A DNA stretch of 64,000 nucleotides from Adineta vaga (GCA_021613535.1 CP075495.1:9424001-9488000); one strand, 5' to 3'; shown: positions 7,011 to 29,909, counted from the first letter of the stretch. Notes: generated by a model not told the origin, from the sequence alone. Numbers and translations: made by a program.

Positions 7011-7696
7011 AATAAAATGTCGATGACAAAAGAAAAAAACAAGATATTTCTATTATGAATTATTCGATCGAATACAAAGCACGAAAAAAAAACCGCGCGT
7101 GTTTAATAAATATTTCGATATTTGTTTTATGAATTATAGATTTTATCATTAACTTCTCGAAAAAAATGAAGTTGCAGGCCTGGAATTATCCATATATGAT
7201 ATAATGACGCTTTATCTACTCAGAAAAGATTTGTAAATGTATTTTATGACATTGTTATGACACGTGATAGAACATAACTAACGATGCAGTTAATGCCTGA
7301 ATGCTTTCTGTTAATGAAAAATAAAAGAGTTGGAAAATCAGATAATTAACATGTCAGATCATTTGTTGACAATCAAATATTTCCGAATGGATTACTATCG
7401 TACCAAGTCAGAATTTTCACAAAAAATGATAGAAAACGATCGATTATACAAGTAGAAATATGATTCTAAATTACAAAACTATTTCTTGATTCGAACAAAC
7501 ATTCAATATTCTGCATTTATAGAATTATTTTTTCCCCATGAAAAGAACGTTGATTAAACTAGTGTTTGAAGTTCATTCAATATGACTATCTGTTTAGTAT
7601 ATATGTATGTATGTATATATATATATATAGTTGTCAAACTTCTTTTCTGACATCTTATTTAGTTTGTCATTTATGACAAAGTCTTTATTATGTCGA

Positions 7697-7714
7697 ACAC
7701 ACACACACACACAC
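7697..7714 (+). repeat. (AC)n microsatellite upstream of the neuropeptide gene
   Basis: acacacacacacacacac, followed ~10 bp later by tgtgtgtg. Confidence 0.85.
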
Positions 7715-7926
7715 GTCTCTACTGTGTGTGTAGGATGATGGTTAAGTGAGTGGGTGCAAATACTAAAAAGACTAGAACAACGAACTGATGACTAATCATT
7801 TAGTATTAATTGGATCTGTTCGTGGAGAAAGAACGAGAAACTAAAGAGATCTCATTTATATAAATATGTATCCATTCTATCTATATTGTCTATCTATATT
7901 CAAATAGACAGCTTAACACCAAACAT

Positions 7927-8394
7927 ATGGCACAAAGTCATCGATTTCTTGCTTTTAGTTGTATTACAATTGTTCTTCTATTGACTATTTCGAAATGCAG
8001 TTCATCGTATCCATTATTTACGGAATTACCAGGTAGAATTTCAGTGTATTTGACTAATCAATCATATCAATGAAAATTTATTTTAGTTCCAGAACGTCCT
8101 GCAAAATTTGTGTCAAAAAATGATGTGAATCATTATGTTAATCGAGTATAATCACAGAAATCTCTTTTATACTTATATAGATATATTCAATCGTTCATTT
8201 TCATTTAGATGAAACAATATTATGAAACAATGAAACATTTGAGATATTGGCGTCGAGATATCGATCAATCAGATGAAGAATATGATGATAAATTAGAAGG
8301 TAAATATTTATTACGAAAATCAATATAGAAGAAAACGTTGTTTTTTCTCTCAGATATACTTCAACAATACAAGAATCTATATTATAAACGTTAG
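7927..8394 (+). CDS. NPY/NPF-like neuropeptide precursor, 98 aa, 4 exons (7927-8032, 8087-8145, 8209-8299, 8354-8394)
   Basis: Splices to MAQSHRFLAFSCITIVLLLTISKCSSSYPLFTELPVPERPAKFVSKNDVNHYVNRMKQYYETMKHLRYWRRDIDQSDEEYDDKLEDILQQYKNLYYKR*. It has a hydrophobic signal peptide, the PxRPxxF...Y...YY...RY spacing of NPF, a dibasic RR site and an acidic C-peptide. All introns are GT-AG and phase-consistent. Confidence 0.85.
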
Positions 8395-9843
8395 TCTCTA
8401 TATAAAATCAAGAGCTATTACAAGAGAAATTATCTTTTTTTCCTAAAAAATATTGTGTCGTGCGTGTCATATCTTTGAAATATATGTGCTTTTTTGTTTA
8501 ATGTATATTATTACTCATGATAACATTTTGTGATTATTTATGAGTACATTTTATCAGAAGAGCAATTCATGGCATTGATTTTAATCTTTTTCTTTACAAA
8601 AATACTCAATAAATGAAAATCAATTCGTATAAATCGAATAAGCCTTCTTCTAAAACAGTCTTATACCCCAAAAAATCACAAATAACTGTTTCTAACCAAG
8701 TACATTTGTTTTCATACATAAACAAGTAGATTTTGGATATTTTAATAGCTATTGTCAGTATTTTTTATGATTCAATTATTCTAACATAAGTCACTTGAAA
8801 AACTGTTAAACATATTAGACATTTCTCGAAATATTATAATATGGAATATTTATTATTCATGTGTCTTCATGTTGATAAAGTACTATTTCATCATATAGTG
8901 CATGAACCTTTTAAATAGACAGAAAGTCATCTGTTATTTATATTCATTGAATATTCATAACTGTTGCAATATGCCAAGTACTAGTGTCTGTTAACTTTTG
9001 TGAGGGTTTTATTACTATTATAATCAGTCTTTATTGATAACAATAATTAAATTCATAAAAAGTATTATGTATTTCAGTGTTGATGTTTTCTTCATGATTA
9101 CCAAGAAAGAGTAATAACTAATCAAACAAATATTATTCTCTTGATATTTAGATCTCTAAATTCGTTATAAACTCTAAAATATACACACTCACAATGTATG
9201 AAAAAGATATTAGAGTTACTTGTTGATTACTATTCACACAATTCATTTGGATCATTTTTTCTTTCTATATGACATGTTAAACTGATCAGATTTTATTTAT
9301 TCTCGTCTCAATCGATTTTCATCATTTCGACAAAATATCGGATCTATCTTCAATAGCTCGAATAGATTTATCAATCAATATCAGATATCTTCTATGATTA
9401 TTTATTTATCAAGTTATTTGTATAGAAATCATTGTTAGTAGACAATGGTATTTGTGTTTGTACTTCTCGAATATGAATAAGAACGTTTGAGTTTATAAAT
9501 CTTTTCTTTTGAAAATAATTCTTTATGTTTTTGAAGAAACAAAAAATCCTGTACAAAGGAACGAACAAAGAAAAGAAAAATCCACACAAAAGATGTACGT
9601 TAAATCTATAATTATAATACTAGATACATTATCTGATAATGGGCAACTCACAATAGAACACGGCATACATATACATACATGCACAAGACATAAATAAAAG
9701 TGAAATAGAGGCATCTTATGTTGCTAATGAATAAAACAATTATGTACTGTTGTCAACGAAGACTAAGAAGAAGAAAAACAGAAAAAAAGGCAATGAAAAT
9801 ATATCACATGAAAAATAATCGTCGTTTCGTCATCGGATATAAA

Positions 9844-23951: not shown

Positions 23952-24443
23952 TACGTTTTATTCTTTCGTTTAGCGTGCTTTTATCTTTTATACGATATGA
24001 ATAAAGAACTATTCATTTTATTTCTTCTTATCATTTTAAACCATTTTGTTGTGAAAACAATCAAAGATTAGTTCATTGAGATAAAAAGATTCACTTAACG
24101 ACGAATTATTATGTGAATATATGTATATAATATACCTACAAATTGTACAATTTCTCTCTCACTCTCTCTCTCTCTCTGTATCACTGTTGGCAGTGTAATT
24201 CTCCTATCTCACTTTCTATCTTCGTCAGCTTTTTATGCACGGTTCAAGTAATAGAGAATAATGAATTTCACCTGATACCATTGTATTTTATATTTTATTG
24301 GAAAACAAGTTAGCATGATTTTGATGCCATTTCTTATCATCAATAGATGTATGTCGATAGCATAAAACGAACGAAATCAATACTACTTATACGGCAAATA
24401 CAAAACATACATGAAAAGAAACAAATCTGCGAAGAACTGGTTA

Positions 24444-26641
24444 TTATGTTCGACCACCCAGATTTCTATTGAAACGCAGTGCAAGATATGCACTAATACG
24501 AAAGACTACAAACATTGCAAACAGAACAACAAAATTAGGTCCAATATCAAGACCAGCATCAAAGTAACGAAGAGCATCAGAACCATAGAATGTGCCATTG
24601 GTATTGTTTCGACATATATCTATGTACGATCCATCAACACATCGATATACATTATCACCTTTAAATTGTAATCGAATGCATGCACTGTAAGCATATTTAA
24701 AAAAAGACAACCATGGACTCCATGTACCTAACCAGTTAGGTAAGTTTTTAATGAAAAAACCACCTACTAACATTAGAGTAATCAGAAGAACTGTTGCAGC
24801 TGTAATGGCATGATGTAAATTTCTAAATGAAGCACCGAGAAAAAGACCGATCGATTCAGCTACAAGGATGGATAGAAGCTGAAACACAAGGATGCCAAGA
24901 AAGATCCCAAAACTATCGTTGATTCTTGCCATCCAGTAGGCAATAATTAGAAATAATGTGGGTAAAACCAGTTTTAATGGTGCTTCTGCTAATGATTTTC
25001 CAAGAAAATAAGCCGATAGACGAAACGATCCACTTGCACGTTCTTTATCAATAACGGCACGTTCAAATGGAAACGATAATAAACCCATCATTAAAGTCTG
25101 GAATGGCCAAAATGTCATAATAAAGAAAATAAATGATGATCGGTCAGGTATTGTGGTTTCCCTATATTCCATACGTAACCAGCAAAAGCCACATACTACA
25201 GCTATAGTCAGTGCTTGAGCGAAGTTGAGAAATGTGAATTGAGCTTTACCAGTCAACCGAAAACTTCGTGAAAATAATATCAACATTTGTGCTAAAAATC
25301 CAATCGGCCATTTCCCTTCTCGTTTCTCTGGAATCAAATTCACATTATCTGGATTTGTCAAGTCACTTTCTTTTCCTGATGGTTCTGCCATCAAATAACG
25401 ACTAGATTCCGACAATTGTTGTGGTACTTTATCAGCAACAAGACGATGCTGAAGATAGGCTTCTTTCAGTTCTTCACGAATCTTCATGTCTTGATTCACA
25501 AGATCCATCACATAATCTGCTGGATTGTATTGGGCAGGACATTGATGACCCATCGTCGAGAAATATGCAAGTGCATTCGATGGTCGACCCTACACAGAGC
25601 ATAGAACAAACATGAATGTATACTCTCAACACAATCAGTCGATACATACCATGAAGATAGCTTTACCATCTGCGAGAAGAATGAGCTGATCAAACGATTG
25701 AAAGATTTGTGATGACGGCTGATGAATTGATGTGATGATTGTTTTGCCTTGCATGGCTAACTCACGAAGAACATCCATCAATGAAACAGCTGATGTACTA
25801 TCCAAACCAGATGTTGGTTCTATACGAACATTTCGATATAAAAGATATTCACATTCGATTTCGTCTTCACTTACCATCAAGAAAGATGACACTTGGATTA
25901 GTGAGAAGTTCAGTTCCGATGTTGACACGTTTCTTTTCTCCGCCTGATATTAACATGATGGGTGTATTAGCGCATTTTCGAATGCGAAGTTGATCAATGA
26001 TTTGCTCGACTTGAGCAAGTTTATCTTTTCGTGAGAGATGATTGGGTAATCGAAGAAGTGCAGTATAAGTGAGTTGTTGTTTGACAGTGAGACTTTCGAA
26101 GAAAAGATCTTGTTGAAGAACATATGCAAGTTTTCGTTTCATTGCTCGATCATATTGTTGATTGTTGTACCAAATATTACCAGTGACACCACTCAACGCT
26201 CGACCAGCAAGTGTATTGAGAAGTGTGGTTTTACCACATCCTAGTAAAGAATGAAGGTAAATATGTGGATGTGAACGCGTGAAATGAATGTAACTAACCT
26301 GATGGTCCCATGAGTGCCACGATTTGTCGAGGATGAATTTGACCTGAGAGATTGTCGAGAAGAGTTCGTTGAATGAATCGTTCTTTTGAAGTTGGATCGA
26401 TCATTTTGGCTGGAACGTTGATGACTTTGGAGACACCGTGAAATGTAACTGTAATGCGAGATGATTGTGTAGCTATGATTTGAGCACCTTCCAGTGACAT
26501 TGGGATCTGCAATGTATCTCCATCGCGCATTTGAATGACGGTATCTGCATTCATAGACTTTTCATTTGTAAAATCTTTCTCATCATTTAAGTCGATTTCA
26601 AATGCGTTATTGTGATTTGGAATATCTAGTGCGGTAGGCAT
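24444..26641 (-). CDS. ABCG (White-family) half-transporter, copy A, 4 exons
   Basis: Walker A GPSG|CGKTT, signature ISGGEKKRV, Walker B/D-loop VIFLDEPTSGLD, H-loop TSIHQP, NPADY motif and a 6-TM domain with KERASG..RLSAY. Confidence 0.95.
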
Positions 26642-27711
26642 TTTCGATTTCTAGTCGAAAAAATTTTCTGAGTTGGAAAATATTTGCTAGGCATGTATAT
26701 ATATGATATTCCTGTTGGATCGTATGTTATTACGCAAAGTTTATTTTGGTTGAAAAACACACCGACGCATGCTGAGTGCAATTGTATTTCGTAGTTATTT
26801 TCTTTTGATTTGCGATACTTGAGGCGTATCATTTATTTGGTTTTATTTGAAGCACAGGCGTGAGCAGATAGATATAAAAAATACGTGACTATTTTGCTTG
26901 ATTTGAGGAGAGATGCTCTGCGAGGACAAAATATTCAATAGGTGCATTTGACTACACAATTTTGATTAACGCAATATAAAAGGTATTTTTTTTACTATTC
27001 TACAGTACTTGGTCTGGTATGTGACACCCATTACAAAAAAATATAAATTTATTATTTCATCGTTTCTTTACGTATTATTTTTTTTCCTGTCAAGGTGCTG
27101 TTTTTATAATCGTGTATATTATTTATATGGTCCGATCGAATGATATTTTACTGTTGACAAAGGCGGAAAAATAGTTTTGTTGCGAAATTAAGTTTTTCCA
27201 CAGATTGAAATTAGAAAATGACATGTGAATATGCATGAGATTTGCCTCATATAGAGAAATAAAGACGTTGTAAAATTATAATTGTATGGTTTACAGGCGT
27301 TTTTTACTATCTATTTATATTACTCGGTCATTTTCTGACTTATTTCTTCGATTATTTGCAACAAACTATGTCTGCATTCTTTTTACTTAAATTAAAATGA
27401 TTGAAGTGTTCTCGTACATTTTAAACTTGTAATTATCGACTTTAAATTTCAGTTCAAATAAAAGAATTTATATCTGTCTATGGATGGTCTAGAGTATGCT
27501 CATTTGATCTTAGAAACGATAATCATAATTAATCAATATAGTTTAAATAACATCGAATTCAATATCTCAAAAACAATGAAAATATTGTCACGTAATAATA
27601 ATAGTTACCAATAAATCTACTATGTAAAATATTTTATTTTTATTATTATATAAATACATATTTTCGTATCTATAATATAGAAAACATATACAATCATACG
27701 AATAAAACTAA

Positions 27712-29909
27712 TCATGTTCGACCACTACTGTTATTGACAAATCGTAATGCAAGATATGCACAAATACGAAATACTACAAACATGCCGAACAGTACCAAAA
27801 AGTTCCAACCAATATGAATACCATAATCAAAATAATATATTGCTTCATTACTAATAAATGTTCCATTCGGATTATTTCGACATGAGACGATAATCGAACC
27901 ATCAACACAGTCATAGATTTGTCCACCTTTGAATTGCAGTTGTAAACATGCATTATAAGCATATTTGAAGAATGACAACCATTTACCCCATACACCTAAC
28001 CAATGTGGAAGATTTCGAACAAAAAAACCACCTACTAACATTAGAGTAATCAGAAGAACTGTTGCAGCTGTAATAGCATGATGTAAATTTTTTAATGCTG
28101 CACCGAGCAAAAGACCTAATGATTCGGCTACCAAAATGGATAAGAGTTGAAAAACAAGAATGGCGAGAAAAATACCAAAATTGTTGTTAATTCTTGCCAT
28201 CCAGTAAGCAATAATTAGAAATAATGTGGGTAAAACCAGTTTTAATGGTGCTTCTGCTAGTGACTTTGCAACAAAATAAGCCGATAAACGATATGCTCCA
28301 CTTGCACGTTCTTTTTCGATAACACCACGTTCAAATGGAAACGATAATAAACCCATCATTAGTGTTTGTAAAGGCCAAAAGGTCATCAGAAAGAAAATAA
28401 ATGATGATCGGTCAGGTATCGTGGATTCACTGAAGTCCATTCGTAACCAGCAGAGACCACTGACGATAGCTAATGCTATCGCTTGTGCAAAGTTAAGAAA
28501 TGTGAATTGAGCTTTACCAGTCAACCGAAAACTTCGTGAAAATAATATCAACATTTGTGCTAAAAATCCAATCGGCCATTTCCCTTCTCGTTTCTCTGGA
28601 ATCAAATTCACATTATCTGGATTTGTCAAGTCACTTTCTTTTCCCGATGGTTCTGCCATCAAATAACGACTAGATTCCGACAATTGTTGTGGTACTTTAT
28701 CAGCAACAAGACGATGCTGAAGATAGGCTTCTTTCAGTTCTTCACGAATCTTCATGTCTTGATTCACAAGATCCATCACATAATCTGCTGGATTGTATTG
28801 GGCAGGACATTGATGACCCATCGTCGAGAAATATGCAAGTGCATTCGATGGTCGACCCTACACAGAGCATAGAACAAACATGAATGTATACTCTCAACAC
28901 AATCAGTCGATACATACCATGAAGATAGCTTTACCATCTGCGAGAAGAATGAGCTGATCAAACGATTGAAAGATTTGTGATGACGGCTGATGAATTGATG
29001 TGATGATTGTTTTGCCTTGCATGGCTAACTCACGAAGAACATCCATCAATGAGACAGCTGATGTACTATCCAAACCAGATGTTGGTTCTATACGAACATT
29101 TCGATATAAAAGATATTCACATTCGATTTCGTCTTCACTTACCATCAAGAAAGATGACACTTGGATTAGTGAGAAGTTCAGTTCCGATGTTGACACGTTT
29201 CTTTTCTCCGCCTGATATTAACATGATGGGTGTATTAGCGCATTTTCGAATGCGAAGTTGATCAATGATTTGCTCGACTTGAGCAAGTTTATCTTTTCGT
29301 GAGAGATGATTGGGTAATCGAAGAAGTGCAGTATAAGTGAGTTGTTGTTTGACAGTGAGACTTTCGAAGAAGAGATCTTGTTGAAGAACATATGCAAGTT
29401 TTCGTTTCATTGCTCGATCATATTGTTGATTGTTGTACCAAATATTACCGGTGACACCACTCAATGCTCGACCAGCGAGTGTGTTGAGAAGTGTGGTTTT
29501 ACCACATCCTAGTAAAGAATGCAGGTAGATATGTGGATGTGAACGTGTGAAATGAATGTAACTAACCTGATGGTCCCATGAGTGCCACGATTTGTCGAGG
29601 ATGAATTTGACCTGAGAGATTGTCGAGAAGAGTTCGTTGAATGAATCGTTCTTTTGAAGTTGGATCGATCATTTTGGCTGGAACGTTGATGACTTTGGAG
29701 ACACCGTGAAATGTAACTGTAATGCGAGGTGATTGTGCAGCCATGATTTGAGCACCTTCCACTGACATCTGAGTTTGCAATGTGTCACCATCACGCATTT
29801 CAATCAAATGTACTTTATGTCGACCGCTCGGCGTATATTGCGATGCTTTTTCGTCGGTTGGTTCGATATAAGCAGGATTTAAATACGAATTCTGGTCTGT
29901 AGCGCTCAT
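27712..29909 (-). CDS. ABCG (White-family) half-transporter, copy B, tandem paralog
   Basis: Same motifs and intron positions as copy A at a 3268-bp offset; starts MSATDQNSYLNPAY. Confidence 0.95.

Follow-up and report, generated by a model that had tools for sequence, protein, structure and literature searches.

The four-exon gene of the bdelloid rotifer Adineta vaga described here (E1) probably encodes a prepropeptide derived from the neuropeptide F/Y (NPF/Y) family, which would be cut at a pair of arginines to yield a 42-residue peptide with a free-acid C-terminal tryptophan and a divergent receptor. In the NPY/NPF family amidation and the R-x-R-F/Y end are treated as activity-defining. 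In the lineage of E1 both defining features are replaced by an invariant Trp end that cannot be amidated, and this end is kept under selection in two bdelloid families. A description of E1 and its relatives (the E family) was not found in the searchable literature, and the database members are all labelled "uncharacterized", "unnamed" or hypothetical.

Gene structure and transcript

The gene lies on chromosome 2 within the window, by which we mean the whole stretch of 64,000 nucleotides analyzed (C2:9424001-9488000 of the 100.8-Mb assembly in six contigs that was searched). Reading of the sequence and translation of the pieces gave four exons on the plus strand at 7927-8394, with 297 coding nucleotides corresponding to 98 codons and a TAG stop (Table 1). 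The three introns of 54, 63 and 54 nt all have GT..AG borders and lie in phases 1, 0 and 1. This reproduces exactly the 98-residue signal-peptide precursor proposed in a first-pass annotation of the window. The gene had there been called hidden, which is right insofar as it appears only as fragments in the naive list of open reading frames (ORFs) of the window, but the spliced product is identical to a GenBank entry (P0005, "hypothetical protein I4U23_008709 [Adineta vaga]"). When the locus was searched as DNA against the genome, it matched only itself.

Contigs from sequencing runs of the same organism were aligned to positions 7700-8700 (1,001 letters). The splice joints were found at the exact positions of the model in contigs X1, X5 and X6, which stem from three separate studies, and the X6 contig continues after position 8638, i.e. 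25 nt past the AATAAA signal, with 15 unaligned A. The runs had been labelled RNA by guess only; their RNA origin is settled by the spliced joints and the poly(A) tail. X6 represents a slightly divergent strain or allele with seven differences, including a synonymous change at 8007 and a change of the stop codon from TAG to TAA at 8394. At the Trp codon no alternative letter was reported in X1, X6 or the DNA run X10. The Trp is therefore neither an assembly error nor a private allele of the reference.

Microsatellites of the types (TA)n, (TATG)n-like and (CA)n / (TG)n occupy positions 7600-7735 of the window, 200-300 nt upstream of the transcription start of the gene.

Table 1. Features of the E1 gene (positions in the window) and NPF-like ohnolog pairs of the A. 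vaga genome.
Feature	Position	Strand	Remarks
Candidate TATA box TATATAAA	7857..7864	+	some 35 nt before the first transcribed base observed (5' end of X5, 7899); read from the sequence, putative promoter element
5' UTR, minimum extent	7899..7926	+	RNA contig X5 covers 7899-8030
Exon 1, coding part	7927..8032	+	predicted signal peptide codons 1-27 (7927-8007) and start of the peptide from Tyr28 onward; ends in phase 1; joint 8030/8085, cut +2
Intron 1	8033..8086	+	54 nt, GT..AG, phase 1; joint present in X1, X5 and X6
Exon 2	8087..8145	+	Pro-rich P-E-R-P-x-x-F to ...Y-V-N-R; aligns with exon 2 of the NPF genes of the genome
Intron 2	8146..8208	+	63 nt, phase 0; joint 8145/8209 in X1 and X6
Exon 3	8209..8299	+	conserved C-terminal half of the peptide (M-K-Q-Y-Y ... 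L-R-Y-W), RR site, acidic flank
Trp69 codon TGG	8248..8250	+	predicted C-terminal residue of the mature peptide; invariant in the relatives aligned
Arg70-Arg71, CGT CGA	8251..8256	+	predicted dibasic convertase site; no Gly codon; GGT CGA in the ohnolog
Intron 3	8300..8353	+	54 nt, phase 1; joint in X1 and X6; missing from the environmental bdelloid locus L020
Exon 4, coding part	8354..8394	+	end of the C-flanking peptide (...Y-K-N-L-Y-Y), terminal K-R, TAG stop; tail motif kept in orthologues
3' UTR	8395..8638	+	AATAAA at 8608-8613, poly(A) site near 8638; X6 contig
L002 / L003	G000:C1:9631773-9631874 / G000:C4:2462771-2462872		end ...A-R-P-R|F-G-K-R; phase-2 intron in the penultimate Arg codon
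L008 / L010	G000:C4 / C1	- / 	end ...G-R-P-R-F-G-R-S; no intron in the Arg codon
L007 / L011	G000:C2:10092551-10092616 / G000:C5:8987019-8987090	- / -	end ...G-R-W-R-S-RR / ...G-R-W-R-V-RR; neither with Gly
L004 / L005	G000:C1:8898414-8898494 / G000:C4:3471478-3471558	+ / -	single exon; end ...Y-Y-D-A-F-K-I/V-K-L-V-RR

Kinship to the neuropeptide F genes of the genome

To obtain the NPF-like genes of A. vaga, the Pfam family Hormone_3 was searched against the whole genome and the matching loci were then read. The genes form an expanded set that is arranged as ohnolog pairs (Table 1), and the E1 locus is not among the matches of this search. One match (L016, G000:C2:11697964-11698032, E 0.76) was discarded as a false positive, since it lies in a larger coding exon that is unrelated. 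In the pair L008/L010 one intron, in phase 1, immediately precedes the Pro-rich motif, and another, in phase 0, follows the first conserved Tyr at a distance of three residues; L007/L011 have the same exon structure. The pair L004/L005 has neither a Gly nor an R-x-R-F/Y end.

Based on sequence comparison we conclude that E1 is a divergent paralogue, by descent, of these NPF genes. If the seven full-length members of the E family are compared by hhalign with an alignment of the four NPF-like ohnolog pairs, entered exon by exon, a match with a probability of 93.6 % and an E-value of 2.1e-7 is obtained over 31 gapless columns, reaching from the P-x-R-P motif to four residues beyond the Y-Y pair. 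Intron 2 of E1 (Arg55|Met56, phase 0) and the phase-0 intron of L008/L010 (RPRF-G-R) and L007/L011 (R-W-R-x-RR) occupy one and the same column of the hhalign mapping, and intron 1 has the phase of its counterpart in those genes and lies within one codon of it. A search of the whole genome with the E profile returned E1 and its ohnolog; apart from these it matched nothing but the K-L-V-RR loci L004 and L005, the closest relatives of the E family in this search, with an E-value of 0.003, and both are Hormone_3-positive. In an alignment with the canonical NPF genes of the genome the spacing P-x-R-P-x-x-F / 8 / Y / 6 / YY / 6 / R-aromatic agrees, and in E1 as in the NPF paralogues the peptide follows directly after the signal peptide and has Tyr as its first residue.

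The Pfam assignment points in the same direction below the formal threshold. Hormone_3 (PF00159) is the top family for 4 out of 7 members with a best E-value of 0.004, all scores being below the gathering cut-off of 28.7 bits. The A. vaga protein P0005 reaches 14.5 bits (E 0.037) over model positions 3-27 only, so that the match stops before the defining C-terminus. Separate exon translations gave no Pfam family, the pieces being too short. When the ESM Atlas was searched with a language model, PF00159 was carried by all of the 14 best named clusters, with scores of 0.93-0.94 and 186-191 shared features, and the first structural row was pro-neuropeptide Y with a TM score of 0.42; this tool yields leads and not proof. 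A profile search of the PDB sequences returned chance-level matches only, with no NPY, PYY or PP among them; oligopeptidase F was one such match and was rejected as a relative.

The NPF likeness could also have arisen by convergence of a Pro-rich start and a Tyr-rich helix in an unrelated orphan peptide specific to bdelloids. The Pfam score below the cut-off, the PDB sequence search without a match, the absent C-terminal RxR[FY]-Gly signature and the fact that no member was detected outside the bdelloids would fit such an origin. We nevertheless regard it as quite unlikely, because convergence of motifs would have to account for the gapless profile-profile match to paralogues of the same genome, the identical column and phase of the intron, a reciprocal genome-wide search that matches Hormone_3-positive loci only, the uniform Hormone_3 assignment of the best named Atlas clusters, and the same precursor layout as in the NPF genes. 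The derivation from the NPY/NPF family, which the first-pass annotation had proposed from residue spacing, is borne out by the hhalign match, the intron place and phase, the layout and the sub-threshold Hormone_3 match taken together.

Classical NPY/NPF genes carry a phase-2 intron in the codon of the penultimate Arg. The absence of this intron from E1 had been pointed out as unusual. It is indeed missing, but this is not a special feature of E1, as the RPRF-Gly-Arg genes L008 and L010 do not have it either; it is retained only by the RPRF-G-K-R pair L002/L003, and E1 shares its intron place and phase with the RPRF-Gly-Arg genes.

The terminal tryptophan in orthologues and in the ohnolog

Exon 3 (30 amino acids) was searched by exhaustive HMMER, which returned a 98-residue protein of A. 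ricciae and two shorter ORF fragments. The spliced protein of the window was found via this orthologue and was then used as database record P0005; further word searches were started from these records and alignments. All full-length orthologues, namely those of A. ricciae (two copies), A. steineri, Rotaria sp. Silwood1, Rotaria sp. Silwood2, R. sordida and R. magnacalcarata, contain Trp-Arg-Arg. Approximately 15 exon-3 ORF fragments from metagenomes and Logan assemblies read W-R-R as well, with one cluster reading W-K-R. The Trp is invariant in every full-length relative aligned and is present in every fragment that covers the site. The basic pair is RR or KR in every member read with the exception of two proteins of the ohnolog lineage, which have GR; Arg71 is invariant. 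Sequence searches detected no members outside the bdelloids, short peptides limiting the sensitivity of such searches. The conservation of the Trp and the basic pair in seven named species and in environmental bdelloids indicates a selected feature and not an error.

Twelve residues of the mature peptide are invariant in ten full-length proteins (Y1, F4, R12, K15, R28, M29, K30, Q31, Y32, T35, L39 and W42). The C-terminal half is the best conserved region, with 15 out of 15 residues identical to A. ricciae, 14 out of 15 to A. steineri and 11 out of 15 to Rotaria, compared to 12-16 out of 27 in the signal peptide and 14-20 out of 27 in the flank. This most constrained part, R-M-K-Q-Y-Y-x-T-M-x-x-L-[RK]-x-W, is probably the one that contacts the receptor. 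The residue before the Trp varies (Y, H, N or L) and the preceding one is R or K, leaving L-[RK]-x-W as the fixed end. The "R-Y" before the Trp, which varies at both positions, can thus not be regarded as a fixed relic of an RY-amide end.

The W-K-R cluster is located on contigs of 50-100 kb from a bioreactor metagenome and a JGI metagenome sample. It shows the exon 1 / exon 2 / exon 3 structure and the phases of E1, and the third intron is missing. In these contigs (L020 and L021, positions 1250-1632) exons 3 and 4 are accordingly fused to one ORF of 43 amino acids, and the encoded peptide has 38 residues with a shorter N-terminus and a Phe replacing the first conserved Tyr. The protein of R. 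magnacalcarata (P0023) contains a two-residue insertion (I-K) exactly at the junction of exons 2 and 3, which could mean that the splice site is shifted, either in the gene itself or in the way it was annotated.

The search of the A. vaga genome with exon 3 revealed one weak second site at C5:8542609. In a tblastx comparison of the window with C5:8522000-8561999, collinearity extended over a long block, conserved genes flanked the second site on either side, and the site itself was exactly in register. This ohnolog (E2, annotated as I4U23_024625, P0013) has the same four exons and phases as E1 and reads ...L-K-H-W-G-R-S. Here the Trp is retained, and Gly and one Arg come after it, as in the G-R-S of the canonical RPRF-G-R-S genes. 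The orthologue of E2 in A. ricciae (P0024) has Trp-Gly-Arg, too. The deciding codon of the two A. vaga copies differs by a single base, CGT in E1 and GGT in E2. Judged from these codons the E2 lineage can be amidated to a Trp-amide and the E1 lineage cannot, both states being conserved between Adineta species. E1 and E2 are the only pair seen in the genome whose ohnologs differ in this respect. In a maximum-likelihood tree the E2 clade (100/100) and the Rotaria clade (87/87) are recovered and the base of the family is not resolved, so that the tree does not tell whether W-RR or W-GR is ancestral.

The first-pass annotation had read the Trp as a mutated Gly. Alignment with the RPRF-G-K-R genes does place the Trp in the Gly column and RR in the K-R column, but this is a positional argument only; the Trp is invariant, and in E2 the Gly follows it. 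If the non-amidated paralogues are used for the alignment, the Trp appears as one extra residue before RR. Under either reading of the columns it is certain that the Trp is old and selected. As to the proposed check for conservation of W-RR, the motif was recovered from the orthologues of at least seven named bdelloid species, but not from the ohnolog with its W-G-R; the Trp codon is unchanged in the divergent strain or allele X6. Glycine in the reads or orthologues, absence of a spliced transcript and absence of profile similarity had been listed as findings that would speak against the annotation, and none of them was made.

The single-base difference from the ohnolog at the Gly/Arg codon might raise the suspicion that E1 is a decaying, functionless duplicate whose amidation signal was lost by recent mutation or by an assembly error. 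This is highly improbable and can be considered refuted in practice, as W-RR or W-KR occurs in two bdelloid families and on many environmental contigs besides the seven named species, the C-terminal half is unchanged between A. vaga and A. ricciae, and three studies agree on its transcription and correct splicing without a variant at the codon.

With E1 and E2 a clean natural pair is available for the question of how amidation and the last residues set the receptor choice of PP-fold peptides. A more far-reaching proposal is that both genes form a natural switch between free-acid and amidated Trp on one PP-fold scaffold, which would have been kept since the bdelloid genome duplication. It would constitute a new ligand system that is not directed to the NPF receptors and may act at the protostome receptors for aromatic-ended peptides (NPY-4 / GPR139-related), with the free acid being an agonist in its own right or naturally antagonising the amide. 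We offer this as speculation and consider it rather unlikely in this complete form.

Within the same tblastx comparison with chromosome 5 we observed that two adjacent segments of the window (24427-26540 and 27704-29810) both match one stretch of chromosome 5 (approximately 8555957-8558035), which suggests that some 3.3 kb of a chromosome 2 gene were duplicated locally in tandem relative to the ohnologous region.

Predicted processing and comparison with known systems

The E1 precursor can be divided into a hydrophobic and helical stretch (residues 1-27), the peptide (28-69), the Arg pair (70-71) and a flank (72-98), with the cleavage site of the signal peptide predicted before the invariant Tyr28. 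This layout corresponds to that of NPY/NPF precursors, which consist of a signal peptide, a single peptide of about 36-42 residues, a basic site and a C-flanking peptide, and the canonical paralogues of the genome are built alike. The end of the peptide with its basic pair, H-L-R-Y-W-R-R, lacks the family signature of R-x-R-F/Y, a Gly as amidation donor and a basic site, in agreement with the first-pass annotation. Genes with a copper type II monooxygenase domain and many precursors with Gly-basic sites are present in the genome. Amidation chemistry is hence plausible in A. vaga, and its predicted lack here would be a property of this substrate and not of the animal.

We propose that the signal peptide would be removed before Tyr28, a prohormone convertase would cut after Arg70-Arg71, and a carboxypeptidase would then remove both Arg. 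The released peptide of 42 residues would begin with an extended N-terminal stretch that contains Pro, continue as a long helix and end in a free-acid Trp, the amidating enzyme having no substrate because a Gly is not present. Cleavage would also set free the acidic and conserved C-flanking peptide, whose end ...Y-x-N-L/F-x-Y before the terminal K-R is conserved as well. The amidated Arg-Tyr/Phe end is the portion of the ligand that inserts into the pocket of NPY receptors, and free-acid analogues have almost no activity. The E1 peptide is therefore not expected to act as an ordinary NPF agonist. Since the amidated Arg-Phe/Tyr end is gone, it would most likely signal via a receptor or a binding mode that the canonical RPRF-amide peptides of A. 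vaga do not use.

An AlphaFold2 (AF2) model of the precursor (pLDDT 65.7) predicts helices at residues 3-26, 49-71 and 79-97. In the model of the mature peptide (pLDDT 69.9), which is to be read for secondary structure only, residues 1-13 are non-helical and a helix spans 19-41; in a PP-fold a polyproline-type stretch at the N-terminus packs against an amphipathic helix at the C-terminus. A Foldseek search of the 42-residue peptide model, which is of moderate confidence, against the PDB gave no match. The predicted precursor helix continues through the W-R-R site, and this counts against cleavage. If the precursor remained uncut at Arg70-Arg71 and only the terminal Lys-Arg were trimmed, a secreted two-helix protein of about 69 residues would result (helices 49-71 and 79-97). 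The second helix predicted in the conserved C-flank and the conservation of this flank and its terminal motif across genera would be in line with such a product. We consider it unlikely, as the basic pair coincides with the processing sites G-R and G-K-R of the canonical paralogues, Arg71 is invariant, position 70 is occupied by R, K or (in the ohnolog) G, all of which give recognised processing signals, and conservation is lower in the flank than in the C-terminal half of the peptide. Cleavage at the Arg pair thus remains the preferred reading.

Rotifer neuropeptide F was first reported in the NP-HMMer preprint, which describes NPF_1-5 of A. ricciae, all of them belonging to the two amidated RPRF types (10.1101/2024.07.20.604414, Figure S7); neither the E family nor other non-amidated types are included in its A. 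ricciae list. E1 and two more non-amidated pairs (L007/L011 and L004/L005) extend the rotifer NPF repertoire in size and variety beyond these five amidated genes. Compared to the canonical NPF/NPY precursors E1 is alike in having a signal peptide followed by one Tyr-initial peptide of about 40 residues with a Pro-rich start, in the spacing F-8-Y-6-YY-6-basic-aromatic, and in the basic site and C-flanking peptide that come after it; with the RPRF-Gly-Arg subgroup it also has the place and phase of the intron in common. It differs in having L-[RK]-x-W in place of the R-x-R-F/Y amide, in the missing Gly and in its sub-threshold Pfam score. The pairs L007/L011 and L004/L005 resemble E1 in belonging to the same genome and superfamily, in being kept as ohnolog pairs, and in having RR where the canonical genes have Gly and a basic site. 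Unlike E1 and E2 they possess other C-terminal motifs and no terminal Trp, and the Gly is missing in both ohnologs.

Long NPY/NPF-like paralogues that use non-canonical receptors have precedents. Platynereis NPY-4 activates a member of the protostome receptor clade for peptides with an aromatic, amidated end, and the spiralian NKY activates an sNPF-type receptor (PMC8557429). Both peptides end in RF/RY-amide, unlike E1, and orthology to E1 is not implied by this likeness. For paralogues of one family that differ in C-terminal amidation, a precedent is provided by allatostatin-C and -CC, which are non-amidated, versus allatostatin-CCC, which is amidated (10.1101/129783); these peptides belong to an unrelated arthropod family of the disulphide-bridged, somatostatin type.

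Two further observations concern the canonical NPF genes of the genome. The precursors of L002 and L003 contain a run of Arg just before the stop, with four residues in L002 and six in L003. In exon 3 of L008, downstream of the RPRF-G-R site, the C-flanking peptide includes an EF-hand-like D-x-N-G-D...E-F loop, and a similar D-N-N-G-D stretch is present in L010, its ohnolog on C1.
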